Assembly (NCBI GenBank): GCA_965649825.1
Contig: OZ287699.1
Coordinates: 836,477 to 900,476 of the forward strand
Length of the DNA stretch: 64,000 nt
From: Penicillus capitatus
Taxonomy: Eukaryota; Plantae; Chlorophyta
Reading direction: 5' to 3'
This document shows positions 1,814 to 32,800 of the stretch, piece by piece; position 1 is the stretch's first letter, and each line of letters starts with the position of its first letter. Made by a program: the position numbers and the translations under genes. The notes below the pieces were generated by a model. The model did no database searches, had not been told where the DNA came from, and worked only from the letters and a program-made list of their open reading frames with translations.

Positions 1814-2113
1814 CGAACTCGGACGTGAACGAACAAACGCACCGACAACGCCGGACGGGAAGGAAGACGAGCAGGGAGACGCCGAACGGGGACAACGAAT
1901 GCGGACAGCGGTCGATTGGGTTCGAACGCAGACTGCCGCGCTCGGAAAAGAAACGATCGGCGAGACGAGAGTTCGCGCTCGATGGAGAAGGACGAAACAG
2001 TTTGTCGCCCTTCGTAATGGACGATCAAGGACGCCGAGACCGACGAAATGGAACTGTCGCGTCATCGTCGATCGATTTCCAGGACGCGGATCGTTCGGCG
2101 GCGACGCATCGGC

Positions 2114-2525
2114 ATGGACGTCCGGCAGCAGGTTCGAATCGAAACGCGTCGCACAGGCGCGATCCGTCCCGACAGGTGAAGAACTACCGTGCGACCCAGC
2201 GCCATGCGGGAAGGGGCGAGGCACGTGTGGATCATCGCATCGGGACGTCGATGTGCGTTCCGCTGCAGTGGGTCGCGCACGAGGCGTCCGCGGACGAGGA
2301 GGCGCATCGACAGGCGCTGCAGAGACTGGCCAACGGCGACGACGTCTCCTACCAGAGCACCCTGCGAGTGGTGAGGGTGGACGCATCTCGGTTCCCGAGA
2401 GACCAGAATCCTCCGGTCGAGCGCAACCCGGTGCAGCCGTTCACCCCTCTCTGCAGACGGGACGTCGGCGCATGTGGCTCCAGGGCTACGCTCGAAACGA
2501 GAGCGGAGGGTTCTTCACCTCCTAG
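2114..2525 (+). CDS. Unannotated 77-aa protein, 4 exons: MDVRQQVKNYRATQRHAGRGEWVAHEASADEEAHRQALQRLANGDDVSYQSTLRVTGRRRMWLQGYARNESGGFFTS
   Basis: Three phase-0 introns (GT, GC at 2221-2268, GT) join into an open frame ending in TAG at 2523-2525. Retained intact in both arms while the flanking DNA diverges. Confidence 0.65.
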
Positions 2526-2647
2526 ATCGCGAGGCCGGGCGATGCGGCACCGCGGACGTCGGTCACATCACTGCCGTCGCTCGGCCTTTCACTGAGAGTG
2601 GGGTTTGTTACGCATCGCCCTGTTCCGGAGTGTAAATCGATTCGGTC

Positions 2648-3619
2648 ATGGGTCCGCTCACCAACGCGTTCGTTCGCACGGTGCCCGTGCTTCGCGGCGT
2701 CCGGCCGTCGAAGGTCAGCGACTGCGTTCGGTCGCCCGGTCGCCCGCTTGTCGAGGCTGTCGCCGCAGCCACCGAAGTCGTTCTTCTGCCCCCAACGTGG
2801 AGTGATCCGACAGGTCGCTGCATCGAGAAGGGTCGCAGAGTGGTCGCGATCGGCGTCCCTTGCGCCGGGATGCCTCATCTCCCATCGCCGTCGGAGAACC
2901 ATCCCTCGACAGCCAAAGCGCTCGGTCCTTCGATTCTCCGTACGGCGATCTCGCCCCGCACCTGCTGCGATCGCTCTCGCCTGTTCAGTACATCGACGAG
3001 GACCTGTACGGAGACGACGATGACGACCTCGACGACGACGAGGTGATGGGGTTCGGAACCGACCTCGGCGGAGACGAGGACGAAGCCACGGATCCCAGCG
3101 AAGCGATGGAGGCGCTGCTTGACGAGGAGGAGGAGGAGACGGATGCCGACGAAGAGGAGGAGGCAGAGATCTCGGCCGACACCGAACAGGACCCGCCATC
3201 CGGATGCCCGAAGGGCTTCGCGCTGAGCTTCCTGTGGCTGGACAAGTACATCGCGTTCGCCGTGGACCAGATCTTCGGAAACGCAAGCGATCCGAACGCC
3301 GTCCATTCCTTGCGACCAAGCGACCTTGTGCGTGTAGAGAAAGCGTATTCCGCTGACGGAGTACTTCATCTGGCCGAGGACCGATGCCTGGGAGGAGCTC
3401 CGGCAGAGACTGAGCGAGAACGCGTGGATCGACGAAACGGATCAGGCGAGTGACGCGCCGAGCCGAACGACTGCGCACTGACGCTTCTGTCGCTATGCCC
3501 AGATCCTGCTGCTGAACCGGGCCACGCAGGTGATCAACTTCTGGCAAGACGAAGAGCAGGGCCGCTCACTGGACGACGCGAGACGGCAGTTCCCGGACTG
3601 CGTTTTCATGGGATCTTAG
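2648..3619 (+). CDS. PSRP3: Plastid-specific 30S ribosomal protein 3 (Ycf65 family), left copy; transit peptide plus acidic linker
   Basis: Spliced [39 protein letters not shown]...[13 protein letters not shown] matches the Ycf65 signature. GC-AG introns at 3283-3337 and 3446-3502. Confidence 0.9.
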
Positions 3620-3735
3620 ACGCACGCCTGCATTCCGACGGACACCTCTCTGTTCGCACACCGGGAAATGTTTTGAGAGCCGACTCTCTGTCTGTCTGCG
3701 GCCGCGGGAATCGAACGCGATGTCGTCGACACGCG

Positions 3736-3909
3736 TCAGTATCCGTCGTCGTATCCTCCCTGAAGTCCCTCGTCCATCTGCATCGGAACACCGTCGGTCC
3801 CCTGCGCCTCCGCCTTGATCGCTCGCCGAATGTCCTTCAGCTTCGACGCCAGGATGTCGATGGACTGCATCAGCACTTCGGCAGCGTTGAGCACGCCGGT
3901 CGTCTCCAG
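3736..3909 (-). pseudogene. RPB3: Orphan duplicate of the RPB3 terminal exon
   Basis: 174-nt exon with 3 differences from 13756-13929 (LETTGVLNAAEV vs LETTGVLDAAEV). CAG acceptor retained; upstream exons absent because the arm ends inside the intron. Confidence 0.85.
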
Positions 3910-3952
3910 CTGCGGCACAGGAAGATCGCATTGCTTCTGTTTCTTCTCACAG

Positions 3953-4024
3953 AACAGGTCAAAGACGAAGGAGTTGTTGAAGAAGCTACCCATGTGTATT
4001 GCCAACGACGCCCTGCGGCGCTGA
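3953..4024 (+). other. Possible stranded terminal exon (NRSKTKELLKKLPMCIANDALRR*) of an unidentified gene cut by the duplication junction
   Basis: Pyrimidine tract plus CACAG acceptor 22 nt from the arm boundary, followed by an open frame to TGA at 4022-4024. Confidence 0.35.
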
Positions 4025-10317: not shown

Positions 10318-10391
10318 GCTTCTTTAGCTCAGTTGGTTAGAGCACCCGTTTAGTAAGCGGGAGGTCCAGAGTTCAAATCTCTGAGGAAGCA
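10318..10391 (+). tRNA. trnT-AGT: tRNA-Thr(AGT)
   Basis: Cloverleaf: acceptor GCTTCTT/AGGAAGC, D arm GCTC/GAGC, anticodon arm CCCGT-TTAGTAA-GCGGG, T arm CAGAG-TTCAAAT-CTCTG. No encoded CCA; TTTT follows at about 10396. Confidence 0.96.
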
Positions 10392-11168: not shown

Positions 11169-12503
11169 TCAGTATTGGTATCCCTTCTCATACATGCCGA
11201 CGGCGGCCTCGGCAGATTCTTCAGAGGGATCATACTTGCCAAGCTGTGCCATGCTGTTCGCTCTGGCACGCTTGAGCAATGCTTCTTGTGCCGGTTTCTC
11301 ATTCGCCTCATCCCCTTGCCACGTTTGCAGCACAGAGTTCTGCAGAGCACGCGCATAGGAGAAAGAGACATGCCACGGATTGGTCTCTTGGTTCATCGCG
11401 TTGAGATTCAATGTCGCTTCGAGTTCCGATTGGCCACCGGACAAAAACATAATGCCTATATTCAGATCCTCTCACTCTTCTCACTCATCAATACGACTTG
11501 CTTACCGGGTACGGCAGGGGGGACACGTCTTTTCAGCATCCGCAGAGTATATTCCGCCACGCGTTCTGGCGATTCTTTCTTAGAGCTGTCTGCTCCGGGT
11601 GTGACCATGGAAGGTTTGAGAAGCATGCCCTCGAACAGAACGCCGTTGTCGGCAAGATACTTAAATGTCTCGGCCCAGATGTCCATAGCCACAGCCAGTG
11701 TCCTGTCAATGTCATGATCGCCATCTAATAGCACTTCTGGCTCGACGATGGGGACCAAGCCAGCAGATTGGGCAATGGCCGCATAACGTGCCAGTCCATA
11801 GGCACAATCGCGCAAGGCAATGATCGAAGGACCCGATGGAATACTAATAACAGATCTCCACTTAGCAAAGCGTGCGCCTGCTTGGTAATACTCTGCACAT
11901 CTAAGATCACACAGATCACTGTTTTAATAAAGATCCCAAAAGATGATGATCATCACCGTGCCGCCAATCCGTCCAGTCCCTGACACCAGCTCTCTTCGTT
12001 GGCGTTAATCAAAGGCGACAGTCCTTTGTCGACTTTAATACCCGGTACGATTCCTTGTGCTTTCAAGCAGTCGACAAACGGCTTTCCGTCGCGTGCCGAT
12101 TGATAAAGCGTTTCTTCGAAGAGAATCGCGCCGGAGATATATTGACCGAGACCCTCTGTCGTCAACAGCAGTTCGCGGTACGTGCGTCTGTTCGGCTCGG
12201 TATTGTCGACGCCAATCGACGCAAGACGCTTTCCGCATGTCGCATTCGATTCATCCATCGCCAAGATGCCACGACCGGGAGACGCGATCTGTTTCTAAGC
12301 ATCACAACGAGTACAAGGCTTAAGATCCATCGGTCCACCGACACGGTGACGGGACGTACTGCTGTGGCAACAAGTTCATCGTCATAAGCGCCGGCACGTG
12401 TCACAACGCGCGTTCTTTGAGGACGAACAAGACGAGCACGTGTTGGTGCGTGCGGTCTTCGCAGAAATACAGCTTTCCTTGTAGCGAGAAGAGACGTTGC
12501 CAT
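11169..12503 (-). CDS. FBA: Plastid class I fructose-bisphosphate aldolase, 4 exons
   Basis: Transit peptide, [56 protein letters not shown]-terminal GMYEKGYQY. Confidence 0.97.
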
Positions 12504-12694
12504 CTTGCGCGACAGAGGTATGCCAATGCAGTAGAACGTAAAGAGACGAAGAAACGCGAGAACCAAAGGTTGCACCCCTTGATGACCGTCTGTTTAAAAG
12601 GGATCAGGACAGTGGGTGCCACGTGGAGCGGACCGTATACGAAGCATATACGGTTGGAAGGCAGGACGTTGGGACGCCAGAGCACCAACCATCC

Positions 12695-13929
12695 ATGCAA
12701 AGGCATCCGATTATCACGATGCGTTCCTGCACGGAACTCTCGGCGGAGTTCGTGCTGTCCGGCACAGATGCTTCCGTCGCCAATGCTCTGAGGCGCATCA
12801 TGATTGGCGAGATACCGACGATCGCGATCGAACTCGTCGAAATCGAGACCAACACGACCGTGCTGACGGACGACTTCCTGGCACATCGACTGGGACTCAT
12901 CCCCCTGTCCTCTCTGCGTCGGCATCCTCCGTCCCTGCGACGTGGGTTCTGATGGGACGTCTCTGTTCAGAGGCCGCCAAGATGGTGGGCGCCTACGACA
13001 ACGCCGAGGAAGACATCGACGAGATCGAGCTGTTTCTGGACGTGCACTGCACGGAGGAAGAGCGAACGGTGCGGTCATGAGCATCCCTGCATCGCTGCAC
13101 GGGGATGCTGTTCGCAGATGCTGGTCACATCGAAAGACCTGTCCGTGGGGACGCCCAACGTCGACGTGGTCCCCATCGGCCATCCGGGGTTCTGCTTCGA
13201 CGACATAGCGAACATCCCGGTCACCGTCGTCAAACTGAGACAGGGACAGTCTCTCAAACTGAGGGCCATCGCCGTGAAGGTTCGCTCTCTTGTGTCCTCC
13301 CTGCATCGCCCGTGATCAGGTTTCTGCGCGAGACCAGGGAATCGGGAGAGACCACAGCAAGTGGAGCCCCGTCTCCGCCGCTTCCTTCACGAATATGCCC
13401 GAGATTGCCTTCAACGAATACGTCCTGGCCGGATGGTCCCCACAGCGCAAGATCGAGCTGTTCGAGGAGCTGGCCGAGTGCTTTCCGGTCGGGCGAAACC
13501 CCTTCTGCCTCGACCTGCCGGCCAAAAAGGTCGGTTCTCTCTGCCACACCCACCCGCCGACAAGTGCAGACCGACTGCCGCAGATGATTCTCAAGCCGGA
13601 GCTGTACAACTTTGACGACGCGCACGTTGCCGTGCTGGAGAAGCACGGGGTCCCGGACCTCTTCAAGATACAGTCGGTGCCGGGCACCTTCATCTTCAAA
13701 GTGCGTGTCCGCGATCAGATGCCGACGCGTTGCGATCTTCCTGTGCCGCACGCAGCTGGAGACGACCGGCGTGCTCGACGCCGCCGAAGTGCTGATGCAG
13801 TCCATCGACATCCTGGCGTCGAAGCTGAAGGACATTCGGCGAGCGATCAAGGCGGAGGCGCAGGGGACCGACGGTGTTCCGATGCAGATGGACGAGGGAC
13901 TTCAGGGCGGATACGACGACGGATACTGA
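12695..13929 (+). CDS. RPB3: RNA polymerase II subunit RPB3, multi-exon
   Basis: DASVANALRRIMIGEIPTIAIELVEIETNTTVLTDDFLAHRLGLIPL, VKLRQGQSLKL, GIGRDHSKWSP, FIFK-LETTG. Last intron 13701-13755. Confidence 0.95.
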
Positions 13930-14045
13930 CGCGTGTAGACGACGTCGCGTTCGATTCCCGCGGCCGCAGACAGACAGAGAGTCGGCTCTCAAAACATTTC
14001 CCGGTGTGCGAACAGAGAGGTGTCCGTCGGAATGCAGGCGTGCGT

Positions 14046-15017
14046 CTAAGATCCCATGAAAACGCAGTCCGGGAACTGCAGTCTCGCGTCGTCCAGTGAG
14101 CGGCCCTGCTCTTCGTCTTGCCAGAAGTTGATCACCTGCGTGGCCCGGTTCAGCAGCAGGATCTGGGCATAGCGACAGAAGCGTCAGTGCGCAGTCGTTC
14201 GGCTCGGCGCGTCACTCGCCTGATCCGTTTCGTCGATCCACGCGTTCTCGCTCAGCCTCTGTCGGAGCTCCTCCCAGGCATCGGTCCTCGGCCAGATGAA
14301 GTACTCCGTCAGCGGAATGCGCTTTTTCTACACGCACAAGGTCGCTTGGTCGCAAGGAATGGACGGCGTTCTGATCGCTTGCGTTTCCGAAGATCTGGTC
14401 CACGGCGAACGCGATGTACTTGTCCAGCCACAGGAAGCTCAGCGCGAAGCCCTTCGGGCATCCGGATGGCGGGTCCTGTTCGGTGTCGGCCGAGATCTCT
14501 GCCTCCTCCTCGTCGTCGGCATCCGTCTCCTCCTCCTCGTCGTCCAGCAGCGCCTCCATCGCTTCGCTGGGATCCGCGGCTTCGTCCTCGTCTCCGCCGA
14601 GATCGGCTCCGAACCCCATCACCTCGTCGTCGTCGAGGTCGTCATCGTCGTCTCCGTACAGGTCCTCGTCGATGTACTGGACAGGCGAGAGCGATCGCAG
14701 CAGGTGCGGGGCGAGATCGCCGTACGGAGAAGCGGAGGACCGAGCGCCTTGGCTGTCGAGGGATTGTTGTCCGACGGCGATGGGAGATGAGGCATCCCGG
14801 AGCAAGGGACGCCGATCGCGGCAACTCCGGGACCCTTCTCGATGCAGCGACCTGTCGGATCACACCACGTCGAGGCGGAAGAGCGACTTCGGTGGCTGCG
14901 GCGACAGCCTCGACAATCGAGCGACCGGGCGACCGAACGCAGTCGGCTGACCTTCGACGGCCGGACGCCGCGAGGCACGGGCACCGTGCGAACGGACGCG
15001 TTGGTGAGCGGACCCAT
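14046..15017 (-). CDS. PSRP3: Plastid-specific 30S ribosomal protein 3 (Ycf65 family), right copy
   Basis: Same exon structure as 2648-3619 with an intact frame; several amino-acid differences in the transit peptide and acidic linker. Confidence 0.9.
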
Positions 15018-15139
15018 GACCGAATCGATTTACACTCCGGAAGAGGGCGATGCGTAACAAACCCCACTCTCAGTGAAAGACCGAGCGACGGCAGTGACGT
15101 GACCGACGTCCGCGGTGCCGCATCGCCCGGCCTCGCGAT

Positions 15140-15551
15140 CTAGGAGGTGAAGAACCCTCCGCTCTCGTTTCGAGCGTAGCCCTGGAGCCACATGCGCCGA
15201 CGTCCCGTCTGCAGAGAGGGGTGAACGGCTGCACCGGGTTGCGCTCGACCGGAGGATTCTGGTCTCTCGGGAACCGAGATGCGTCCACCCTCACCACTCG
15301 CAGGGTGCTCTGGTAGGAGACGTCGTCGCCGTTGGCCAGTCTCTGCAGCGCCTGTCGATGCGCCTCCTCGTCCGCGGACGCCTCGTGCGCGACCCACTGC
15401 AGCGGAACGCACATCGACGTCCCGATGCGATGATCCACACGTGCCTCGCCCCTTCCCCCATGGCGCTGGGTCGCACGGTAGTTCTTCACCTGTCGGGACG
15501 GATCGCGCCTGTGCGATGCGTTTCGATTCGAACCTGCTGCCGGACGTCCAT
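15140..15551 (-). CDS. Unannotated 77-aa protein, right copy, divergent from AGO
   Basis: Mirror of 2114-2525 with the same length (412 nt) and same splice sites; ATG lies 303 nt from the AGO ATG. Confidence 0.65.
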
Positions 15552-15854
15552 GCCGATCGATGCGTCGCCGCCGAACGATTCGCGTCCTGGAAATCGATCG
15601 ACGATGACGCGACAGTCTCATTTCGTCGGTCTCGGCGGCCTTGATCGTCCATTACGAAGGGCGACAACTGTTTCGTCCTTCTCCATCGAGCGCGAACTCT
15701 CGTCTCGCCGATCGTTACTTTTCAGAGCGCGGCAGTCTGCGTTCGAACCCAATCGACCGCTGTCCGCATTCGTTGTCTTTGTTCGGCGTCTCCCTGCTCG
15801 TCTTCCTTCCCGTCCGGCGTTGTCGGTGCGTTTGTTCGTTCGCGTCCGAGTTCG

Positions 15855-18800
15855 ATGTCGGGCAGAGGAGGCGGAGGACGCGGTGGCTATGGAGGTAGGC
15901 TCGCACGCCTTCGCGCTCGGCGGCACACGCGTCTCGGCACCAACTGTCGAACGCCGAAGGCGAACCGCGTCCTTCTGACGGTGGGCGGATCTGTTGTAGG
16001 TCGCGGCAGGGACCGCGGCAGGGACCGCGGAAGAGGTCGCTTCGGCGGAAGAGGAGGAGGTGCGCCGTTCGCGCCGTCGCTCGTGCTGCTTCCTCACCGG
16101 TGTCTCGCGTTGAAGGTCGCGGCGACTTCCGCGCCGTGCCGGAGGCCGAAGGGCGTCGCCAGGTCGAGCAGATCGCGTCGTCTTTTCGCATCGGACAGCC
16201 GTGCATCTCGGTAGGGAACCCCGCTGCCGCATCGCCGCGATCCGAAGGCGTGTGCCTCGCAGGAGAGCATCGACAGTCCGGACGCGCCGTCCTATCCGCC
16301 GGGCACCATCGGCACGCAGGCCCAGCTCGCGGCGAACTACTTCCAGCTGGACTGTCGGCTGAACAGCGCCTTCCAGTACAACGTGACAATCGGTGAGGCA
16401 CCTCGACGCCGGACGAGCTGCAGCGCGTGTGCGTGCGACAGAGTGCGAGTTCAATCAGGGACTGGAGCACCTGCTGCTCGCTGAGCTGGCCAGGAGGGAG
16501 GACTGGCCTCCGGGGTGGATCTTCGACGGCAAGAACGCCCTCTACACGGCCGGGCAGATCATATCGACCGACGAGCGCGAGGAGACCGTCGAGCTGGAGC
16601 AGGGTCCTAGGTCTCGCCAGTACAAGATCAAGCTGACCCAGACGACCGTGGTGCGCATGAGCCACCTGACGGAGTACGTCCAGCGCAGCCGAGCCGAGTT
16701 TCCGGCAGAGCCCGTCCGCGTGCTGGAGATCCTGCTGTCCCACGCCGCGTCCCTGATGCCGGACAGGGTCCTCCACAGGAAGAGCGTCTTCGTCGACGCG
16801 CAGGCCAACAAGCGCGACATCGGACACGGAGCCGAGGTTCGATCCGCTCCGCCGCGATCGGATCCGTGAGCGATTGCTGCTGCTGCAGGCGTGGCTGGGG
16901 TACCACCAGAGCATCCGTCCCTGCCAGAACGGACTGTTCCTGAACATCGACAGCGCGTGCGCCCCGTTCTACAAGCCGATGCTCGTCTCCGAGTTCATCG
17001 CCGAGATCCTCGGCCAGCAGCACGTCCCGCGCGAGCTCACCAACCAGCAGAAGTCGATCGTCAGAGGCGTCATGAAGAACCTGACGGTGACGCCCTCTCT
17101 CGCCCGCGCGCCGCGCGGAGACGGGCGGCCGCTCTAGGTGAGTCTGGTGCGCGGGAGGATGCGGAAGAAGGTCGTCGGGCTGCTGGATCCGCCGACGCGC
17201 CTCAGCTTCGAGCACAGGGAGCACGGAGAGATCACCGTCGCCGAGTACTACGGGAGGATGGACTGTCCCCTCCACTACCCCGAGCTCCCCTGCCTGGACT
17301 GCTCGAGGGGCAGAAAGGTCTGCTTCCTGCCTCCGGAGTACGCACGGTAACGCCGAGCACCCGCCGCCGGTTGCTTGCTGACGTCGACGGTCGCTTCCCC
17401 GCAGGATCGCCCACGCCCAGTTCGTGAACAAGATCACGGAGCGCCACCAGGAGCAGATGATCCGCTTCGCCGCCCAGAGGCCCGACGAGAAGGAGCGCTA
17501 CCTGAACGGCCTGATCAGGGAGGACGCCGACATCAACCGGATGCAGAAGGTCCCGGACTTCCAGCTCTCGGCGCTGGAGCCCGCCATGAAGCAGATCCGC
17601 GGACGCGTCCTCCCGTCCCCCTTCCTGTCCTACAAGGAGCCGGCCTGCTTCAACGTCGGCACCGAGGGGCAGTGGAACCTCGGGGGGATGACGATGAACT
17701 TCTTCAAGGCGAAGAAGCTCAAGTCCTGGGCGCTGCTGTCGCTGGCGCAGGAGCGTTACATCAACAGGCCCGGCGAGAACGGCATCCAGTCGTTCCTGCA
17801 CGAGCTCTACGAGGCCCTGAGGGCGCACACGGTCATCCCGTCCTCGGTCGACCTGTCGAGGCCGCCGATCGTCTACACAAGCGACTCCAACTTCATCCAG
17901 GACATGGAGCAGGCCAAGGCGCGGGCGCGTGATGCCTACGGCAGGGATCCGGACATCATCCTCTGTCTCATCCCCCGGAGAAGTGCGCGCTCTCATCTGC
18001 GCGGCCCCGATCGGACGCCTTCTGTGCCTCCGCAGATACGCGCCTGTACAAGATCGTCAAGCGGACGTCGGACGTCCACGTCGGCATTCCGACGCAGTGC
18101 TTCGCGGGGGACAAGTCCGGAGTCGGCGACAATCGGCCTCCGAGGGGACGCATGCAGTACTGCGCCAACCTGGCGCTCAAGATCAACGTGAAGGTATTTC
18201 CCTTCCCCTCTCCTCTCCGCGGAACGCAGGGATCGATGCTCCGTAGGTGGGCGGCACCAACTCGGTCCTGCTGGGGACGACGCAGTGCGGACTGCCCATG
18301 GTGCACCAGCGCCGACCCTACATCGTCCTGGGGGCGGACGTGTCGCACGCCTCGCCGGGCTCGCATCTCTCGTCGATCGCCGCCGTGGTGGGCAGCGTCG
18401 ATCCCATGGCGTCCCGCTACTCCAGCCGCATCACGTCACAGCCGCCGCGCGAGGAGATCATCATCGACATGAAGGAGTCCGTCAAGGGACTCCTGCGCGA
18501 CTTCTACGAGCACAACCACCAGAAGAAGCCCGAGTCCATCGTCGTGTTCCGGGACGGCGTGTCGGAGGGCTTCTTCAGCCGGGTGCTGACGCACGAGTAC
18601 AGGGCCATCCGAGAGGCCTGCGGCGAGATGGGCGATCCGGCGGCGGACTACGCGCCGCCCATCACCTACATCATCATCCAGAAGAGGCACCACACGCGTC
18701 TGTTTCCGAAGGGGCAGAACGTCGCCCACCGGAGCGGGAACGTGAAGCCCGGGACGGTGGTGGACTCGGAGATCACCAGTCCCTACGGCCACGACTTCTT

Positions 18801-19107
18801 TCTCTGCTCCCAGGCGGGAATCCAGGGAACCGTGCGCCCCGCGCACTACCACGTGCTGGTGGACGAGAACAGATTCGGTTCGGACGCCATCCAGGTCATG
18901 TGCTACTGGATGTGCTACATGCAGTGCAGATGCACCAAGCCGATCTCGGTGCCGGCTCCGGCGAACTACGCCCATCTGGCGGCGCTGCGTGCGAGGCTGA
19001 TCGCGGGCGAGGAGACGGACGACGAGACGAGCAGCATCGCATCGGGATCCGGGCCGTCGGCCGGACCAGCTTTCGGAGCTTCCCAGGCCAAGATGTACTA
19101 CGTCTAA
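15855..19107 (+). CDS. AGO: Eukaryotic Argonaute (RGG-N-PAZ-MID-PIWI), about 10 exons, slicer tetrad intact
   Basis: AWLGYHQSIRP, PAZ ITVAEYY...YPELPCL...FLPPE, MID LYKIVK...GIPTQC...YCANLALKINVK, PIWI GADVSH / PREEII / FRDGVSEG / HHTRLFP / NYAHLAALRAR (D-E-D-H), ending MYYV-TAA. Confidence 0.97.
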
Positions 19108-19977
19108 TGCGCGTGCGTCGGCGGCATCCATCGATCGTCCTTCTCGACAGGACGCATTTTCCTGTTCTCCTAAGTACCTTCTTTTCTCGTGTTCTCGGCG
19201 CAGCTCTAGTCGCGGAAATCATCGACGACGTGCACTTATCCTCTGGCCGATGTGCTGTTGAGAGTCTTTGACTTCGATAGTGAGGGGGATGGATACCAGT
19301 CGGAAGGATGGCGATGTCATTTGTCAACGTACTGTTTTTTGACAATTTTCGATCGTGGGCAAGCAGAAGGGTGTTCTTAAAAGGGAGAGGGAAATGAATG
19401 GAGTGTTTAAGAAATGAGATATCTATCGGGAGTCGTCTCACAGACATGAGGCCAGAAATGCCTCAGTTCTGTCCCTCGCGATCCACAACGGCGCACCGTC
19501 GTTCGCCGTTTCATAACCGTGCCCGCATCCGCGTCAGCAGCTTACATGCACACTGCATGGCATCGACACCCGACTGCGTGTTCAGGACACCTGCAGTCCA
19601 TCGCGGTTGTCGCCTCGACCTCGTTGGCGCCTTCGTCTAACCGCCATTCGTACCTGACGGAGAGCCAAAACGCCGTGCAGCTGCCGCCGAGATATTGGCA
19701 GCACCTTATCCCGTCTCCAAAAAGGGTCTTCGTGCCATTACCTGCGTCTAAACATCTGCGTCGACGGTTGGACCTTCCTCGCTCTCTGCGTCTCTATTGG
19801 TCTCATCGCTACCGAGGCCATCACTTCCAAGCTAGTCCTTTGACGGTCCATCGACAGCTCGTCTTTACCATCCCACGCTTCAACCATTGCCATTCCGCGG
19901 CACCTCGTAACACACCGGGCGGAAGACCCCTCCCTGACGGCGTCGTCGTTGTTTCAGGAAGAACCGGTCGTTGAAGC

Positions 19978-21842
19978 ATGGACACGGGATTAATCGACGT
20001 GCATATCTCCCCAGAAGACCTGGCGCTGTGCACGCAGGATAGCTTTCTTGCGCCATTCGTTCCGAACGATCTTTCGACCGATTCCGCTTCGACGACGCAG
20101 CTCACGAGTGGAGGCGGTCCTTTGTGCTACAGCCAGAGCTATCCGCTTTCCCCCGCATTCGGAAATCTTCAGGCGCACGAGTTCCAGACGACGCCGATGG
20201 CCGAGGGGTGTGGATTCTTTGACGAGTGTCCAGGACTGTACAGCCAGCCCTTGACGACGCAATGTCCCTTTCAGAACGCCAGCAGTGGAAGCTCGCCCCC
20301 TCCCATGTCAGGAGACCGCATGTACGACGACCTGACCGACTCACTCGATCCCGCCTCGGCGAGGACATTCACAAAGTCCGTCATTCGATTCTCCCAAACC
20401 CCCATCGATGGATGTTCTCAGGGATTACTTGACAACGGCGGCGAGTCTGCACCAGGAAGCCCAGGCGTCCGTGGGGAGTCTGCAGCAGCTGCACGTGGCC
20501 GCATCGAACCGACTGCTGATCACAGACTTCGACAGGTCATTGCCGTCCGACGCCTTCCACGTGTCGAAGACGCTGCCGCCGACACTATCGAGCCAACCGC
20601 AGCAGATGGAGCATCCCACCCATCGATGTGGTGCGGGACTGTTCGAGCCATCTCTTGCGATTCGCAGCGCGTCGTGGAATGAGCCTGTCGTCAAGGAAGA
20701 GATGACATCACAGCGCGCCTCACCTCAGCGTCGGAGCGAAGACTCGTGCGGCACGGCGCCCAAGAACAGATGGAAGCCGAACAACACGCAGCTTCATCAT
20801 CTGGAGCAACACTTTCGAACAGGCACGCCGATCCTCGCCATCTGACACGCAGTCGACCGAAGGGATGCCCTGCTGTTGCAGGATACACCAAGGCAACGCC
20901 AGAGCTGTTTCGGGCTGTGCAGGAGGCAGGTCCGGTGACGGAGCTGCAGGTGTCTGTGTGGCTGAAGAACAGACTCGCACGATACAAGCGTGATCCAATC
21001 AAGGTGCGATCCCGGCGGCGCCGTATGACGCTGACGGCGAGCGAATGCATGTCTGCAGCAAAGCGAACCTCGTTCCGAGGAATCAAGCACTTTCGACTCC
21101 GACAACATTGATGCACCGATGATGATTGGGAACAAGAGAGAAAGACAGGAGGACAGGAGGAATGAAGACTTTGGCTACGTGCAGTCAGCTGTGCTCGATG
21201 AATTGTCCACAATTCTTCAGTCTGTCGACCCTCGAGATGTGACAGGACTAGCGCGTGCGATTCGAGATGCCAATCGCATTTGCTGCTATGGCGTCGGCCG
21301 AGAAGGACTCGTTCTGAAAGCCTTTGCCATCAATCTGCACAACCTGGGTTTCAAGGCCTACTTCGTGGGAGATACCAACACCCCTGCGCTGACGACCGGC
21401 GATCTCTTCGTAGTCGCGGCTGGACCGAGTTACTACAGCACGGTATCCCACGCCCCCTTTTCCTGATCTTGTGGGACTGAGCGTGGATGGTGCGTGCGTG
21501 TTGCTCTAGGTGAATGCGCTGTCCCTGGAGGCACTGAGGTCGAGAGCACGCGTGGTTGCGTTCACGGCGCACAAGACGGCTCCCTTGCCATTCGTGGATG
21601 GCGTGATACGCATCGCATCGCAGACGTTGCCGCCCTCTATGCCGGTCATGAACAGAAAGCTTGGAGGTCTGGACGCGGAGATGGTGTCCTCGCTGCCGGA
21701 GGGAAGGATGAGCATCATGCAGATGGGTGCCTCCTTCGAGACGGCTCTGTCCCTCGTCCTGGAGAGTCTCTGCGTGATGCTCCGAAAGAAGCTGCGCATC
21801 TCTTCGAATGACATGGCCATCAGAGGAAGCAATCTCCACTAG
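19978..21842 (+). CDS. WOX-like homeodomain fused to a 6-phospho-3-hexuloisomerase-like SIS domain (predicted 545 aa, 5 exons)
   Basis: Exons 19978-20317, 20364-20822, 20882-21003, 21059-21442 and 21510-21842 sum to 1638 nt in one open frame. Homeodomain RWKPNNTQLHHLEQHFRTG...GPVTELQVSVWLKNRLARYKR; SIS ICCYGVGREGLVLKAFAINLHNLG...GDTNTPALTTGDL. Exon 1 is less certain. Confidence 0.78.
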
Positions 21843-23189
21843 AAAGTCAGTTCTCCGCTGCGAGCGTCATGCATGAACGCTGAATGTGTGTGTGATTTTG
21901 ATCTCTGCCTCCCACCCAACCTGTGATACATATCTGTCGTGCAAGGATTTCTTCTTTTTATTCGTTCATGAGTCCTACCTATCAGTGATCGACTGCATCT
22001 GATTTTCGATCTCGTTGTCCAGAGGCTTTACCTCGTCGTATGTATGAATAGGAGGCATCGATTGACTTTGCGTAGTAGGTCCTGCTTTAGAAATAAGCTC
22101 CGTTTTCAGTTCACACTGTTTTTAATAATGCACTGCGTGGCGTTGAATCTGGATGCGCTTTCCACCGTCTGTTTCTTTTCGAATTCATTCATGATGTTTC
22201 TAAGAAGAGCTGACAGAATCAGTGACCGATCTTTAAATCAATTAACGTAGATCTCACTCCTGTGTGGCATTTGATTCAGCATTTCATATCTATCACAACT
22301 GACAGCTTTTCAAGCTCAGAAACAACAATAATGGCAACATCTTCTGTTACCTAGAATAAGTACCATGCGTCGTCGTCAAGATTGGCTGCGAATCACAGAT
22401 GTCCTCAGGCACACCGTAGATGCCATTCTTTTACTTTTCTCGGTCCACATTAATTCTTAGTCGTTCGTCTTCGTTGTCTGGATGCCCGTTTCGCGTTCGT
22501 CCCTGATGAACAGGTTTGGGCGAGGCGTCGACTGAATTCGGAAGTGCTGTCGTCCATGAATGCTCAGAAGCTGTTGATGGTGCCCCCTCTGTCTGCGAAC
22601 GTTGAAAACCTGCTGGATATTTCTTTTTGTACGGGTTCTTTCTCCAGTTGTGCTTATTTAACAACAACAACAACTTCTATCGATTTCTGAACAAAGACCA
22701 TTCGTCAATCGTCCCTACGTGCAGTGACAGGTTGTGGTTCAGTCCGGGATCGCCCCGAAATCAAGTCCTGGCAAATGCGGCGGGTCACCAAGGGACACCG
22801 GGTATGTCACTCTTCCTACTGTTGGTGTGATTCCCTTTTGCCATTGGGCCGCTGAAGGCTTCCCGTGCAAAGCAAGCTTTCGTGTAGCGTTGACGGAATT
22901 GAGAGACAACATTTGAAAAGAAAATTAAGAAAGAAGCTGCAACTTGTTATTCTTGGCCGTGGCCGCTGAGCAGTATCAATACTCCGATTATTGAATCGAA
23001 TGACAGAGCGATCAAATCGAAGAGGATGGCCAAAGTTAGTGCAATGTGACATTATACGGCGGGAGATATTTGAGATCGGATGGATCGACTACATAAGCAG
23101 TCTTGCTTCGTAATCTTGATCGATTGTTGCAACTGCGATTTATGGGTGAACGGCAACAGGCGATCGATGGTTCGACGATAGTCGACACC

Positions 23190-25050: not shown

Positions 25051-26772
25051 TCAGAGTAACTTTCCAGCTGCTAATTCTTTCATGATCAAAATTCTGTAGA
25101 GTTGCATCTCGTCTGTCGTGTAGAGCAGAGCGTTCTGTCCACTCAATGCTTTTGCTGTGCGTACCATATATACTCCACAATCACATGAGTTGTGCTGTTG
25201 GGGCATTTCTCTTGCTATCTCAAACACAAAATCGTCTTCTTTCCATTCTGCCTTAAGTTTATCTGCTGCTTCGTCCACGAGATACTTGCAAATATTCTTC
25301 AAAAGCATGTATGTTTCATTGTCCTGTTTGTACTCAAATTGCAAAACAGTGGAAAAGAGTTGAGATGTTACCGTATCGGGGATGTTTGTTCCAAGGGAGT
25401 CATAGTAACGGAGTGTCTTCTTAGTAAGATCGGCCACAACTAACACCCAGTGAGATGCATGAAGATGCACAGGAAAAAACACATAATCGCAGTCCAGAAT
25501 TGTTGCCTTCGACTGACCCCAGTTCTTCAGTCTTCTAGCCGATGTCCACTTGCGAACGGCATTGTATTTATACTCAGGGTAAATGTTTGTCGTCAGGAAC
25601 GTCTTCTGAAAATGGCACGATGGCCCATCTGTCTTTTCAGAATCTCTCACTTGAAGCAATTTCATGTATCCATTCACCACGTTGTCGTTGATCCATTTGC
25701 CAGGCTTGAGGGTATAAAGATCTCTAGGAGTAAAGTCGCAGTTGTCCACAGAAACGCGGACGCCATTGCTGTCTGTATCTGTGACGCCATCGTAGACTTT
25801 TATGTCTTCTTCGGTGATCATCTCACAGCGAAAAGCCGGAACACCAGAACTCGGTGGGATCTTTGGCGCACTGTCCGTGATCGGCTTCTCCACATCACCA
25901 TCGATTTTGATCGACGCCCTCGTCTCCACATTCAGATACTTGGATACAGTTTGGAGCGTCTCGGCAGAAATGTCGACGTCCATGAAGGGACTGTCGATCG
26001 GGAGCTCAGCTGGGGGTGCCATGGTACTGGAAATCTGATACATCAGCTTGGTGTTAGAAGTCGTGGGCTCATCGGAGTCCGTTTCAGCAATCGAGAGCAG
26101 TTGATCCGTTGGAGGTTCTGTCAAGCTGTTCGCCAGGTGACTCGACACCTCGTGCTGTGCTTTGCTCAAAGCTCTGTCCCATTTAGATGTCTTCTTTCTG
26201 TCTTCGGCTGTCAGTCCATCCCACATGCCGGTGGGAACCACATCCAAATCCATAGCGTCCAAGACAGCATTCTTCTTTTCTTGCTCCTCCATGCGTTTCT
26301 TATATGCCTTGTAGGCTTCATCTGTGACCGTAGGGAGTTTTGGTTGTTTTATGGGGGCGACGGCTTCATAATGGCGGAGGTAATCTTCCATCTTGGGGAG
26401 AAGGTGATGGTGGCTGACGTTGAGGATATCGACTCGCGTTTCTCTCATCCTTGCCTCCAATTCGCGTTCCCTATATCATCGTCTTAGGCATAGTGTGTCG
26501 TTTGGAAGGCAGAAAGGATACCTCTTGTTCACGGGCAAGGACTCCTTTTGGCGTCTGCGGTTACTGGCTTCTGCTGCAGCGGCGAGAGCTGCGCGGGGCC
26601 CCATTGGCTTCGTGTCGCGACGACGTCGTTTAGCAGAGGGCATAGACGCAGTGGCGTCGGCATTGCTTTCGGAAGGAAGTGGACCAAAAGGAAACGGGCG
26701 TTTTAACGGAGGAATGGCGGCAGCAACGTTTAGAATGCATTCGTAAACGAACACAACGATGTCTTCGAGCAT
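25051..26772 (-). CDS. ULP1: Ulp1/SENP-family SUMO protease (peptidase C48), 2 exons
   Basis: WINDNVVNGYM, FFPVHLHASHWVLVVAD, QQHNSCDCGVY (His-Asp-Cys triad). Confidence 0.92.
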
Positions 26773-28043: not shown

Positions 28044-29773
28044 ATGGACAAAGGCGTACGCGTCGAAAAAACACACGAGCGGGGACGGCATCTCGTTGCG
28101 CGGCGTTCTTTCGAGCCAGGCGACGTGGTGGTGTCCCAATGGCCTTACGCGGCGGTCTTGTTCAATGCAGAAATCTCACGTTTTTGTAACTATTGTTTTC
28201 GGTCGGCTACAAACCTACGACGTTGCAGTCGTTCAAAGTTCGCAAGCTACTGCTCAAGAGAATGCCAACTCAGGGACTGGAAAGAAGGCTACCGTAACGA
28301 ATGCGATTTCTTAGTCCAGTCTGCTCCACGTATACCTCCCGCCTCTGTCCGCTTGGCAGCTCATGTCGCTTGGAAGTATAAGAAGGAACTTGAACACTCG
28401 TTAGAGAAGACAGATATGTGGAACAGCTACCTCGGCGTCGAGTCATTGGTGGATCACTGGGATCATCTACCCGATGCAAAGCTGAAGGCCTTTGCAGAGA
28501 TGGGATTCTTCATCACCAAGTGTGAAACACTTTGCTGGTCTGCTATGAGGACTGACTGTCCTTGTGTAGCATCTGTCCGCATCTTCCTGAAGAAGGTCTG
28601 TCCCTCGATGAACCTATCGCCAAGTCTTTTGCACGACTGCTGGCCAAGTTTACATTCAATAATCACACCATCAGCAGTGCTAGCACCACCAATCTGGGCT
28701 GCGGTGTCTATCCTCTGCTGGCAATGGCCAACCATTCCTCATGGCCAAACTGCATTCAGCGTTTCGATGGAAAACTCTGCGAACTTAGGTCAGTGCATTG
28801 CTGATGAGGCGCTTGAAGAAACAAACGTGCGTTATGGTTCAGGGCAATTCGTCCGATCCGAGCAGGAGAAGAGATTACGATTACGTACGTGGACCTGATG
28901 AACACGTCCATCGAGATGCACGAGATTTTGAAGAAGGACTACCTCTTTGACCTCATTCCTTCCATCAAAGAGACGAGGAATGAGAAATGGATTGCGATTG
29001 ACAAGGTATTGACTGCCAGAGTATGGAAAAGAGGACAGCCTTCTTGGATTCTGACAGAAAAAGATCATCGGCTGACCAGCGTTGTCCGCAGCCCTGATGC
29101 CAAGGCAGTCGGTGGCGTCATGGTCCTAGCTTATGAAGAAACAGAAACGGAACCGTCTGAATGGGAGATGGATTCCACCGAAATGTCCAAAAAACCAACA
29201 CCGAATACACAGCGTTCTATGACGGTGTGTTTTTGGGGGGACTGGTTCCCAAAGCGAAACGACATTGTTATTGAAATTGCAAAGAAACTCAAAGACATCC
29301 AGGATTCTTTTTTCAAGGGACAGGAGCTCTATGATCAGTCATTCTTCAAAGAAGCTGCATCCGTTGCCCAAGAATCTATGAGACTGTGTGATGACACTCT
29401 GTACGGAGACGTCTCTCTGGCAGAAACGCACATCCTGTGCATCCGTATTCTTGATTTAGTCCGAAAGGCCACAATTGACGAGGGCTGGAATTGGAGACTC
29501 GTTTTGGACTGCTATCGAAGCATGATCCATCATCATGACACACTCTTCCCGCACTACTGGTCAGAAAGGGGTTCGCATCTGGCTGCCCTGGCGAAGCTGG
29601 AGAGTAGTTATGGTGGCATAAAAAAAGCGATCCAATCTGCCCAAGAAGCCATTCATGTGCTTAGAATAACCGATGGCAGCGGCGAAGTTCTGGAAGAGAT
29701 GAAGAAGCTTGAGAAAAACTTGCACCACGAGATCAATTTTAGAGAGCAGGAGAATTTAGAATTAAAGATTTAG
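28044..29773 (+). CDS. SMYD/ASHR1-like SET-MYND protein, multi-exon
   Basis: RGRHLVARRSFEPGDVV, CNYCF...RCSRSKFASYCSRECQLRDWK (MYND), LLAMANHSSWPNC (SET), helical C-terminal domain. Confidence 0.85.
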
Positions 29774-29877: not shown

Positions 29878-32800
29878 TTATTCTAGCATCGCTTTAAGAC
29901 GAACATCTTCTCGAAGTCTGCGATCAAGAATAATATATCTCTGCAAAGCCTGTTCCTCATGGCGCTTTAGCCTTTTCTCAAGAACGCATATCCTGCATCG
30001 AGCATGCACACCATATCCCCGATGAGACTGAGATCACCGGAATCGCGTGGAACTGCATTGCTGCTCATGTTCGTGCACTTGTTCGATGGTCATCTGATCC
30101 TTGTCTCGGTTGTAGTTCGTCATCAGCTTGTTAAGAGAACGCGTTTCGTCATCGTAGCGCATTTGCATGACGTTGGCTCTCTCGATCAACCTCTCCTTCA
30201 GGGAGCGCAAGCACTTCTCTCGTACGAGGAAGGCTTGATCCCTGGATGAAAATTCGGACTAGACTTATGCAAAGGGCGATCGACTTGCTCAATGGGGCAT
30301 CCGACATCGCATTGGGCAAGTATGCACTGAGGTAGTCATATTCGGCCTCTGTGGTGCTATCTCCATCTTCGTCCGTTGGAAAACGAACGACATCGCGAGA
30401 TGCATCGTAGTACGGCGTCACCAGTTTGACATGGAGATCCTGGTTTTGACACTCCGTCAGGATCTCCCGCATTTCTTTTTCTGAATCTCGCACAGACTGG
30501 ACACGCATCGGAGAACATGCACAGGCCAAAGTGATCGCACCTGTAGAGCATTCTTTTCGGCAGTCAACAATTGATGGAACTCCTCTTGTAAGAACAAAGG
30601 CGTCAGTTTTGGAGACGCTGGATCGACCTGCCTCTCCCAAAGTATCGAACGATGTTGTCAACAGGGATCCCTCCACCTGGACGATCTGACTGTGACCTTC
30701 CTTGTGAAACACCCTCGATGAACGCGTGATTCTGCCTTCTCCGAAATGAAAATCCAGACGGATGCGATCCTCTGTCAAGTAGAAGACGCGTTTCGCGACA
30801 TCGGCGTCGCAGTTGCGCGTATCATCTCTCGAGAACTTCTCCGTCAGTTTTCTGATCTCTAATGGTCGCGGATGCTGTTCTGTCTCGCCAGTTTTTTCTT
30901 CGGTAGCTGTCCTGTATGTCACAGAGCGGTAGATTAACCGATCTCGACGATTGGCATAGAGCTCGATGGTTTTCTTCCCAAGAATCTCCTCTCTCGAAAT
31001 CATGCCATCCAATCGAGACTCCGGATAAAACACGAGAACGTTTCGTTCTCCTGCTGTTCTTCGCATTGTTTTCAGAGCGTGCGGATTGCCTGGCAGAAAC
31101 ATCTCCTAGAGAGCACTTCTTTCATGTAAGATGGCAGGGGTGGTGGGGACGACGTAGGTATCGATGACGGTTTCTCCGCTGAGTCTTGTGCATTTTCTCG
31201 CAAGTCTGTCCTTTCTTCTCTTGTAGAGATGGTCCATTCGGACAGCTTGTTTTCGATTCTCATCTTGGTCATAATAGCTCAGGCGGTCGACGAGTCCATC
31301 CCAACGTGCACATTCTCCAAACAGGGCGAACTTCTCATGCGAGCAGTTTCTGTACTTGATCCTCTTGTATCCCTATACAGCGGGCGCCGCCGTGGACTCA
31401 ATCTCAACATTGTGGAGACATACTCTTGGACATCTCATGTTGAGGACATCCTGAGCGAGGTGCAGTCTGAACACCCACGAAGAAGGGATCTCTAAATGCG
31501 AGAGCGGCTGCAGATTAGGGGTACAGCCCGGTCCTTCGGCATCGGGATGCGATGCATCGGGTCCCTGTCGCATATTCGCCATCGCCGACAATATCGTGTG
31601 GAGAAACAACGCTACCGTCGGATGCCTTCTTGGCAGGACGCGTTCCCACTCGGACGGATGATCTAAATCGAAATGTATCTTCGAAGGAATGGCTCTTGCA
31701 TCGGAATCCGGCGATGGCAATTGCATGCAGATCCATAAGTTTTCGTGATTGAAAACAAACTCGATGCCTTCGTAGGGAGAATCATCGATGCGATATATCT
31801 TCCCTGTGCTCGGTTCAATCATTAGACGCTCGGAGATCTGCACAAGGTAGCACCGCTGAAAACTGCAGGAAACGGACGGGCTCTAACTTCTCTCTCCGAT
31901 GGAGCGATCATGATCCATGCGTGAACAAACTTGCTCTTCTCCTGCATCCGTTCTGGACATTCCTGCACAACATGGACGCTGGAATCTCGTGCCTCGCTGG
32001 ATCGGCGAGATCTGCCATCCGTCTCCTCTATCTCTGCAGAAGGAACTGCAAAATCCGATGTCTCGTGCAATTGGGCGCACGTTTGGAGAGAATGCGCTGG
32101 TCTATTTGCTTTGGTTGGTATCGCTTGGATGTCTCCGTGATCGTATTCTTAGCGTTATTCTTCGGTGGGAGTGGCTCTTCGTCAGAGGCCAGCATCTCTG
32201 CCCAACTGTGAGATCCATGAACGATGCGGGTTTGATCGTGGAAGACAATTTCGCTCGGAGCGTAGCCCACACAGACAAACGCATCATAGCCGACTCCTTT
32301 GAGCAGCGAAGCCGAGAGAACTGCTATATCGAAGGCATCGCCCGTTTGCCACTTTAATGTCGTCGTTGGCGACGTCCAGTATCGAGGCAAGACGAGCGGG
32401 TTCTCCAGTTTTTCATACTGAATCGCATCGGATACGAAATTTATGATATCCTCGAGATCATAGAGCTCCTTGTAGTGAAGTTTCGTCGGCCGAATAAAGC
32501 TGCATATAAATTTCTCGACGCCACACTCGTTCATTGGCGACAACACTGGTTGTCGGCGGTGACCATACAATGCAAAGAAAGTGTCCGCGAATCTCCTGGA
32601 ATACTCAAGGAGCTTGCACTCTTTGGGAGTCTGCATTGTGTATGCCCGTGGCATTTTTCCGAGAATCGTTTTAGTGTGTTCAATTCTGCAAAGCTTTGGA
32701 TTTCTTGGCTGTAGAGATACGGAGTCGAGTCTCTTCTCTTTGAGCTGCTGAAGCGAGACCGTTTTGTAAACATCCCAATGCACCAGGCCCTTCTCGATGT

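Follow-up and report, generated by a model that had tools for sequence, protein, structure and literature searches.

In a 64,000-nucleotide stretch of Penicillus capitatus contig OZ287699.1 (hereafter the window, positions 1-64000), sequence comparison identifies one spliced gene that joins a homeodomain to a sugar isomerase (SIS) domain resembling 6-phospho-3-hexuloisomerase (PHI). Alignment of its homologues shows that this fusion is conserved, with both domains strongly constrained, in the Bryopsidales, where there are several paralogues per genome, and in the Trebouxiales. We hold with moderate confidence that the product would be a nuclear transcription factor of an undescribed family, composed of a Lys50 homeodomain, a flexible linker and a ligand-binding regulatory SIS module. 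The features of the gene are as follows:

19978..21842, + strand: homeodomain-SIS gene, whole coding span, ATG to TAG, five exons, about 538-548 aa
20376..20497, + strand: switch from frame 1 to frame 2 in the N-terminal region, a short intron or an assembly indel, exact position ambiguous
20756..21003, + strand: homeodomain, APKNRWKPN...WLKNRLARYKRDPIK, split by intron 2, with the Lys50 codon at 20965-20967
20823..20881, + strand: intron 2, 59 nt, GC-AG, phase 1 in the Gly codon of HFRTG/YTK, within the homeodomain
21004..21058, + strand: intron 3, 55 nt, GT-AG, phase 0, CTGAC at 21031, at the homeodomain/linker boundary
21059..21166, + strand: acidic/basic linker, QSEPRSEESS...GNKRERQEDRRNE, with a conserved K-R-x-R motif
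21167..21839, + strand: PHI-like SIS domain, DFGYVQSAV...RGSNLH, split by intron 4
21290..21310, + strand: GVGREGL loop, at the position of the G-x-G-R-S/T-G loop in canonical PHI enzymes
21419..21436, + strand: AGPSYY loop, at the position of S-G-S/T-G-x-T in canonical PHI enzymes
21443..21509, + strand: intron 4, 67 nt, GT-AG, phase 0 at YYST/VNAL, within the SIS domain
21822..21839, + strand: C-terminal RGSNLH, replacing the RHTNLE of the subfamily

Between the ATG at 19978 and the TAG at 21840-21842 lie five open-frame pieces in differing frames, whose conceptual translation begins MDTGLIDVHIS... and ends in RGSNLH. The start codon is fixed at 19978 because a homologue (P0001) aligns with the window protein end to end (61% identity, 100% coverage), including the initial MD.xLIDVHI. 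A preliminary description of this DNA had noted two open reading frames (ORFs) 7 nt apart and had joined them through a 55-nt GT-AG intron at 21004-21058, and both points were confirmed directly on the sequence: the ORF at 20746-21111 stops 7 nt upstream of the ATG that opens the ORF at 21119-21466. The junction is also in frame, as had been claimed. Removal of the intron shifts reading from frame 1 to frame 2 and yields ...RYKRDPIK/QSEPRSEESSTFDSDNIDAPMMIGN..., so that the spliced translation continues with QSEPRSEESS after the junction. The full gene requires introns 2 and 4 besides intron 3. The boundaries of intron 2 (CAG/GCACGC...TTGCAG/GA) have a GC donor, in contrast to the GT donor of the orthologous intron in Ostreobium; no GT donor occurs before the in-frame stop, and homologues read HFRTGYTK or HFKSGYTK unbroken across the site. 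This splice model was built from genomic DNA and comparison with homologues.

The position of the N-terminal frame switch is ambiguous. Homology to P0001 follows frame 1 as far as about 20415 and resumes in frame 2 at 20498, and the candidates 20376-20421, 20414-20459 and 20449-20488 (range 37-46 nt) score alike against the closest homologue; the region is poorly conserved, and Ostreobium has no intron there. The length of 545 aa given by the preliminary description is reproduced by two of the junction candidates, but several near-equal candidates leave the total ambiguous. The join between homeodomain and SIS domain is unaffected. A further candidate, an intron 1 at 20536-20602 (67 nt, giving 538 aa), was rejected because this stretch is coding in P0001, to which it is homologous in frame 2 (DRSLPSD.FHVS...QQME), so the true junction must lie upstream. 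Residue numbers throughout nevertheless follow the 538-aa model. About 35 residues upstream of the homeodomain, at about 20630-20650, the window has a short motif, GAGLFEPSLA; its consensus, G-L-L-E-P-S-L-T, is conserved among members from the Bryopsidales but missing from Trebouxia.

The intron structure recurs in a gene of Ostreobium quekettii, which has introns of 323, 472 and 687 nt at the positions and phases of window introns 2, 3 and 4, respectively. The 323-nt intron (GT-AG) occupies the intron 2 site; the 472-nt intron follows KRQPK, matching intron 3 in both position and phase; and the 687-nt intron lies at the intron 4 site. The window introns are tiny by comparison (55-67 nt vs 323-687 nt). 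Homologous proteins read straight through the intron 3 junction, as ...ARCNRYPGKESDPKSEESSCFD... in a Caulerpa model (P0003) and as ...KRISSKLGELPSDESSTLD... in P0001. The Caulerpa model has a 20-aa insertion precisely at the intron 2 site, which looks like a retained intron. Two contigs derived from the Sequence Read Archive (SRA) come from relatives: L001 (2257 nt, SRR28002480), which encodes P0001, and L003 (3273 nt, SRR28002482). They carry uninterrupted ORFs of 525 and 532 aa, respectively, that span every junction. These contigs are most likely spliced mRNAs, the simplest interpretation because the Ostreobium gene has 1.5 kb of introns.

Protein and profile searches yielded about 28 homologues with both domains in the same order. 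Querying with the spliced protein gave 19 proteins, 363-607 aa long, in each of which the SIS domain follows the homeodomain; two profile searches, one of them against 1.84 billion representatives, added further members. Named sources of fused members are Ostreobium quekettii (at least four paralogues), Bryopsis sp. KO-2023 (two copies), three Trebouxia strains and Myrmecia bisecta, together with Caulerpa lentillifera, for which the fused protein g474 was confirmed through its EukProt accession. Three other proteins, g6850, g5967 and g1823, are attributed to C. lentillifera judging from identifier style alone. One fused protein is present in both an MMETSP transcriptome and the hypersaline soda-lake metagenome LFIK01. 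Copy number reaches at least three to five per genome in the giant single-celled siphonous algae. Chlamydomonas, Chlorella, prasinophytes, Ulva and land plants contributed no fused member to the search lists, which a two-domain match would top. Across the homeodomain-SIS region the window protein is 41-74% identical to 12 family members, and its closest relatives are from the Bryopsidales (the Caulerpa-attributed g6850 is 64% identical over this part). Like them, it carries in one polypeptide the pattern that defines the family: an RW(K/R)P...W(L/M)KNR homeodomain, a linker, and a GVGREGL/AGP(S/G)Y(Y/F) SIS domain. Conservation in chlorophyte genomes, for which the preliminary description had proposed a search, is shown for siphonous and lichen-type green algae by the fused homologues and the introns shared with Ostreobium.

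The homeodomain scores 20.9 bits against Pfam PF00046, slightly below the cut-off of 22.9, and is modelled by AlphaFold2 (AF2) as three helices with a predicted local distance difference test (pLDDT) value of 86-92. A PDB search with this single sequence gave weak, unranked matches (best E about 1e-3), so that a family profile was needed; the top matches of the profile among PDB homeodomains were bicoid (7.9e-07), STENOFOLIA (1.3e-06) and WUSCHEL (5.5e-06). Residues R5, W48, K50, N51 and R55 are invariant and constantly spaced in 28/28 members, and the DNA-binding part is predicted to be intact. In the recognition helix, VWLKNRLAR, position 50 is invariably Lys, as in bicoid. Lys50 homeodomains are known to recognize a TAATCC-type site, and by analogy such a site is a reasonable guess for the target of the family.

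The preliminary description had called this homeodomain WOX-like, a label that holds only in part. The family shares with WUSCHEL and STENOFOLIA the RWxP N-terminal arm, the L-E..F..G of helix 1 and the A54-R55 pair, and these two proteins, the best plant matches, rank second and third among all PDB chains for the family profile. However, position 50 is Lys, within VWLKNR, where WOX proteins have Gln, within YWFQN. WOX proteins are defined by one to two plus four to five extra residues and by a WUS box, and Arabidopsis WOX genes have no homeobox intron (PMC2775110). In contrast, the R5-N51 distance in this family is 48 residues in all 28 members, exactly one extra residue, and a 4-residue gap has to be opened in the query to align it with STENOFOLIA. 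A regular-expression search of the 28 members found no WUS box (T-L-x-L-F-P) downstream of the homeodomain, and a phase-1 intron follows homeodomain position 22/23 in both the window (20823-20881) and Ostreobium. The homeodomain is therefore best described as atypical, with some WOX-like features; membership in the WOX class is not demonstrated.

The AF2 model (mean pLDDT 78.4) comprises two confident domains separated by a disordered linker, in which pLDDT falls below 50 (model residues 62-99). The linker motif KRxR is present in 19/28 members and may be a nuclear localization signal.

The second domain matches PHI enzymes in sequence, as the preliminary description had claimed from its motifs, and also in predicted fold. 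Its score against the NCBIfam model TIGR03127 (HxlB) is 104.7 bits (E 5e-30), below the equivalog cut-off of 160, as are those of two other fused members (P0004, 107.8; P0021, 118.9 bits). PHI chains in the PDB match at E values of 6.5e-17 to 6e-12 (9lj9, 1jeo and 1m3s at 6.5e-17 to 2e-12). The SIS core of the AF2 model has pLDDT values mostly of 84-97, and Foldseek places it in the PHI-type SIS fold, aligning it to 1m3s (YckF), 1jeo (MJ1247), 1vim (AF1796) and 1viv with target template-modelling (TM) scores of 0.79-0.87 and E values of 2.7e-14 to 2.2e-12. Pfam SIS gives the window copy only 19.6-21.5 bits against a cut-off of 25; Pfam alone would dismiss both domains, since each scores under its gathering cut-off. 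PHI proteins (Bacillus subtilis YckF 1m3s, Methanocaldococcus jannaschii MJ1247 1jeo, AF1796 1vim and the HPS-PHI 9lj9) are the best match in sequence and fold, have a domain of equal length, and share with most fused-family members the MG.xFE motif and the C-terminal R-H-x-N-L-E. The fused family differs from them in having GREG for GRSG, AGPSYY for SGSGxT, an extra conserved loop and the attached homeodomain, and the window copy further lacks the C-terminal His and final Glu and remains at 104.7 against 160 bits.

These motifs assign the domain to a distinct subfamily, outside the canonical PHI branch, characterized by GVGREGL and (S/A)AGP(S/G)Y(Y/F). The counterparts in solved PHI enzymes are G-x-G-R-S-G and S-G-S-G-x-T, with Thr for some of the Ser in related canonical PHI sequences of our alignment. 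The Glu of GVGREGL is present in 12/13 fused and 21/21 stand-alone sequences, and the corresponding residues of the three canonical PHI sequences are Thr, Thr and Glu. In the second loop, A421, G422 and P423 are invariant among fused members, and stand-alone relatives read SAGPG(Y/F)F. These stand-alone proteins of about 185-260 aa occur in Ostreobium (P0028), in land plants (Papaver P0088 and the At5g52190 type) and among bacterial-looking sequences. They are the nearest relatives, with the same GREG and SAGPG motifs, but they have no homeodomain, and their RHTN(L/M)E is invariant. The Papaver gene model adds an ARF-like small GTPase to the stand-alone PHI-like SIS domain; since the same cluster contains a 211-aa member, an annotation that merges two genes is more probable than a genuine fusion.

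The plant gene of At5g52190 type has been listed as acquired from alpha-proteobacteria (PMC3493653). The best explanation for the SIS domain of the fusion is descent from a green-algal stand-alone PHI-like protein, of a lineage attributed by that survey to bacterial transfer. In a neighbour-joining tree the fused SIS domains lie together, adjoining algal stand-alone copies such as Ostreobium P0028. Bootstrap support for their strict monophyly is 23%; a single origin of the fusion is thus likely, but not demonstrated.

To compare constraint before and after fusion, we counted residues by column in 13 fused, 21 stand-alone and 3 canonical PHI sequences. The C-terminal His of R-H-T-N-L-E is present in all 21 stand-alone and all 3 canonical sequences, but in only 6/13 fused ones; for the final Glu the counts are 21/21, 3/3 and 8/13, respectively. 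The difference for His points to relaxed catalytic constraint after fusion. His is lost in the window protein, P0001, Caulerpa, Bryopsis P0009, Trebouxia and Ostreobium P0016, while the paralogue P0017 retains it; such scattered losses imply several independent events. The preliminary description had observed that RGSNLH lacks the His. This is true of the window copy, which has lost the final Glu as well, but it does not extend to the family: Ostreobium, Myrmecia and many other members have RHTNLE, and the RGSNLH of the window gene is not the ancestral state. The loops that form the pocket vary little or not at all among fused members (at G378, R381, E382, A421, G422, P423, Y425, F446-T447-A448-H449, G501, E505, R533 and N536), and the motifs constrained in this way include GREG, AGP and FTAH.TA. 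Several changes beside the pocket are fixed in the fused family (GDMT to GDTN, SAGPG to SAGPS, TAQPD to TAHKTA and LPMGS to MQMGA), and a conserved, family-specific loop of 20-25 residues, QTLPPxMPVMNxKL...SSLPxG, adjoins it. This pattern of constraint fits a domain whose fold and pocket would matter and whose chemistry would be dispensable.

Two groups of known regulators offer parallels. The preliminary description had drawn an analogy with the bacterial RpiR-type proteins, and the architecture does correspond: RpiR, MurR, HexR, NanR and RccR (HTH_6 + SIS) have an N-terminal domain of helix-turn-helix type followed by a C-terminal SIS domain. After the PHI enzymes, the next-best structural matches are members of this family (4ivn, 8k3b, 7en5/7en7 and 3sho), including the ligand-bound NanR with ManNAc-6P, RccR with KDPG and MurR with MurNAc-6P, and NCBIfam models for MurR/RpiR give weak matches. 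The SIS domain of the bacterial family is non-catalytic and binds a sugar derivative. Pfam found no HTH_6 in the window protein, and Homeodomain was the only DNA-binding domain detected. The eukaryotic homeodomain, the PHI-branch SIS domain, the long disordered linker and the eukaryotic host all differ from the RpiR family; the fusion therefore arose independently of it. The plant HD-ZIP III/IV proteins with START (and MEKHLA) likewise are eukaryotic homeodomain factors bearing a small-molecule-binding fold (PMC2775110). However, these streptophyte proteins have an added fold that is START or PAS-like, carry a leucine zipper and are unrelated by descent.

What would an enzyme-like domain do when tethered to a homeodomain? 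In the mechanism we propose, the SIS domain would no longer need enzymatic activity and would serve as a regulatory module, oligomerizing as SIS proteins do. The protein would bind DNA in the nucleus through its Lys50 homeodomain, the conserved pocket at the strand ends would bind a small carbohydrate-type ligand, and ligand binding would alter the engagement of DNA by the tethered homeodomains, following the logic of bacterial RpiR, MurR and NanR. We advance only tentatively the fuller version of this proposal, a one-component eukaryotic regulator built independently, in which a bacterial-derived SIS domain, no longer catalytic, would sense a carbohydrate metabolite and thereby gate the homeodomain directly, in a family that has expanded in siphonous algae. 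Several points weigh against the proposed regulator. The family is known from sequences and predicted structure, and conservation of the pocket motifs could also be explained by a structural role in SIS folds. Position 53 of the homeodomain is Leu, where the usual residue is Arg. Many members retain the full RHTNLE and the conserved Glu and could remain enzymes. The literature searched yielded no source for the catalytic roles of PHI residues, and the C-terminal His and Glu are therefore treated solely as invariant in non-fused relatives. Finally, with Ser changed to Glu in the first loop, the position at which other SIS domains bind phosphate is occupied by an acidic side chain. This disfavours a simple phosphate site, and any ligand might be something other than a classical sugar phosphate.

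The Glu in place of Ser/Thr in the first pocket loop also favours a different role, in which the SIS domain binds no ligand and is an oligomerization scaffold that assembles two or four homeodomains, raising DNA affinity or bridging sites. PHI crystal entries hold 2-4 chains, and residues of catalytic type (the His and terminal Glu) have been lost repeatedly in the fused family. We nevertheless regard this role as possible but rather doubtful: the residues that vary least belong to pocket loops at the strand ends and not to surface patches alone, the conserved QTLPPxMPVMNxKL...SSLPxG loop lies beside the pocket, and a simpler coiled coil would suffice for oligomerization. It is improbable that the protein is bifunctional, with the SIS domain still an active PHI-like isomerase to which the homeodomain adds a second function or location. 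RHTNLE and the Glu conserved in MG.S(F/Y)E do persist in many members, and a bacterial protein with GRER/SSGTG motifs (P0045) passes the HxlB equivalog cut-off at 185 bits. But all fused members tested score 105-119 bits against that cut-off of 160, Ostreobium retains a separate stand-alone copy (P0028), and a His present in every one of the 24 non-fused relatives sampled is missing from the window copy and from three or more other lineages. For the window copy in particular an active enzyme is unlikely; its SIS domain is very probably non-enzymatic.

That there is no fusion, and that an adjacent homeobox gene and SIS gene were wrongly joined by an assumed splice, is highly improbable. The two ORFs are separate in the genomic DNA, the second begins with its own ATG at 21119, and in this organism the splice is known from genomic DNA alone. 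Against this, about 28 proteins, whose sources include at least five named genera, keep a continuous frame; Ostreobium has the intron at the same position and in the same phase; and uninterrupted two-domain ORFs are found on contigs of 2.3-3.3 kb (L001 and L003). A gene-model artefact is essentially excluded.

The neighbouring genes suggest no functional link to the homeodomain-SIS gene. GC content is strongly patchy across the window, at 57-66% in the gene-dense parts (1-4000 and 12000-22000) and 45-52% in the remainder. Directly upstream, within DNA of 60-66% GC, lies an Argonaute gene (13000-19107, + strand) that ends 870 nt before the homeodomain-SIS gene; its ArgoMid ORF occupies 17424-18191 and its Piwi ORF 18247-19107 (265.6 bits). 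Downstream, an AT-richer gap is followed in order by a Ulp1-type peptidase ORF (- strand), a zf-MYND ORF (+ strand) and a DRC7-like ORF (- strand). The Ulp1/C48 peptidase ORF (25051-26460) is uninterrupted, encodes 469 aa (99.4 bits) and lies in an AT-richer region; ORFs of this type are frequent transposable-element cargo. The zf-MYND ORF spans 28044-28898 and the DRC7-like MORN ORF 30149-31102. DRC7 is a subunit of the flagellar dynein regulatory complex, and its presence suggests flagellated cells in the organism. The window contains a single tRNA gene (10318-10391, + strand; Rfam RF00005, 68.4 bits).

A homeodomain-SIS fusion is not described in the literature searched, in which neither the genome paper on Caulerpa nor the classification of plant homeobox genes mentions the family. 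The preliminary description had likewise known of no such protein; the absence of a published account stands, but the sequences are already public, and hence only their interpretation is new. Public databases label them 'Homeobox domain-containing protein', 'SIS domain-containing protein' or 'hypothetical protein'. Precomputed annotations place both Pfam domains together on no family member, and only 3/18 members match Pfam SIS at E 0.01 or better, so that domain calls at Pfam thresholds miss the architecture. The principle itself is known, both from bacteria, in which a DNA-binding domain is combined with SIS, and from plant HD-START proteins, in which a homeodomain is combined with a small-molecule fold.

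Direct metabolite control through an enzyme-derived domain is routine in bacteria and rare in eukaryotes. If the proposed regulation is correct, the homeodomain-SIS family would give eukaryotes a clean equivalent of the RpiR family and, in green algae including coenocytic seaweeds and lichen photobionts, would connect gene regulation to carbon status in a way that can be tested. With a stand-alone parent, fused proteins that keep the C-terminal motif and fused proteins that have lost it in related genomes, the family also offers a natural experiment in the passage from enzyme to regulator. In the giant single-celled siphonous algae, such a protein could couple metabolic state to nuclear gene expression.

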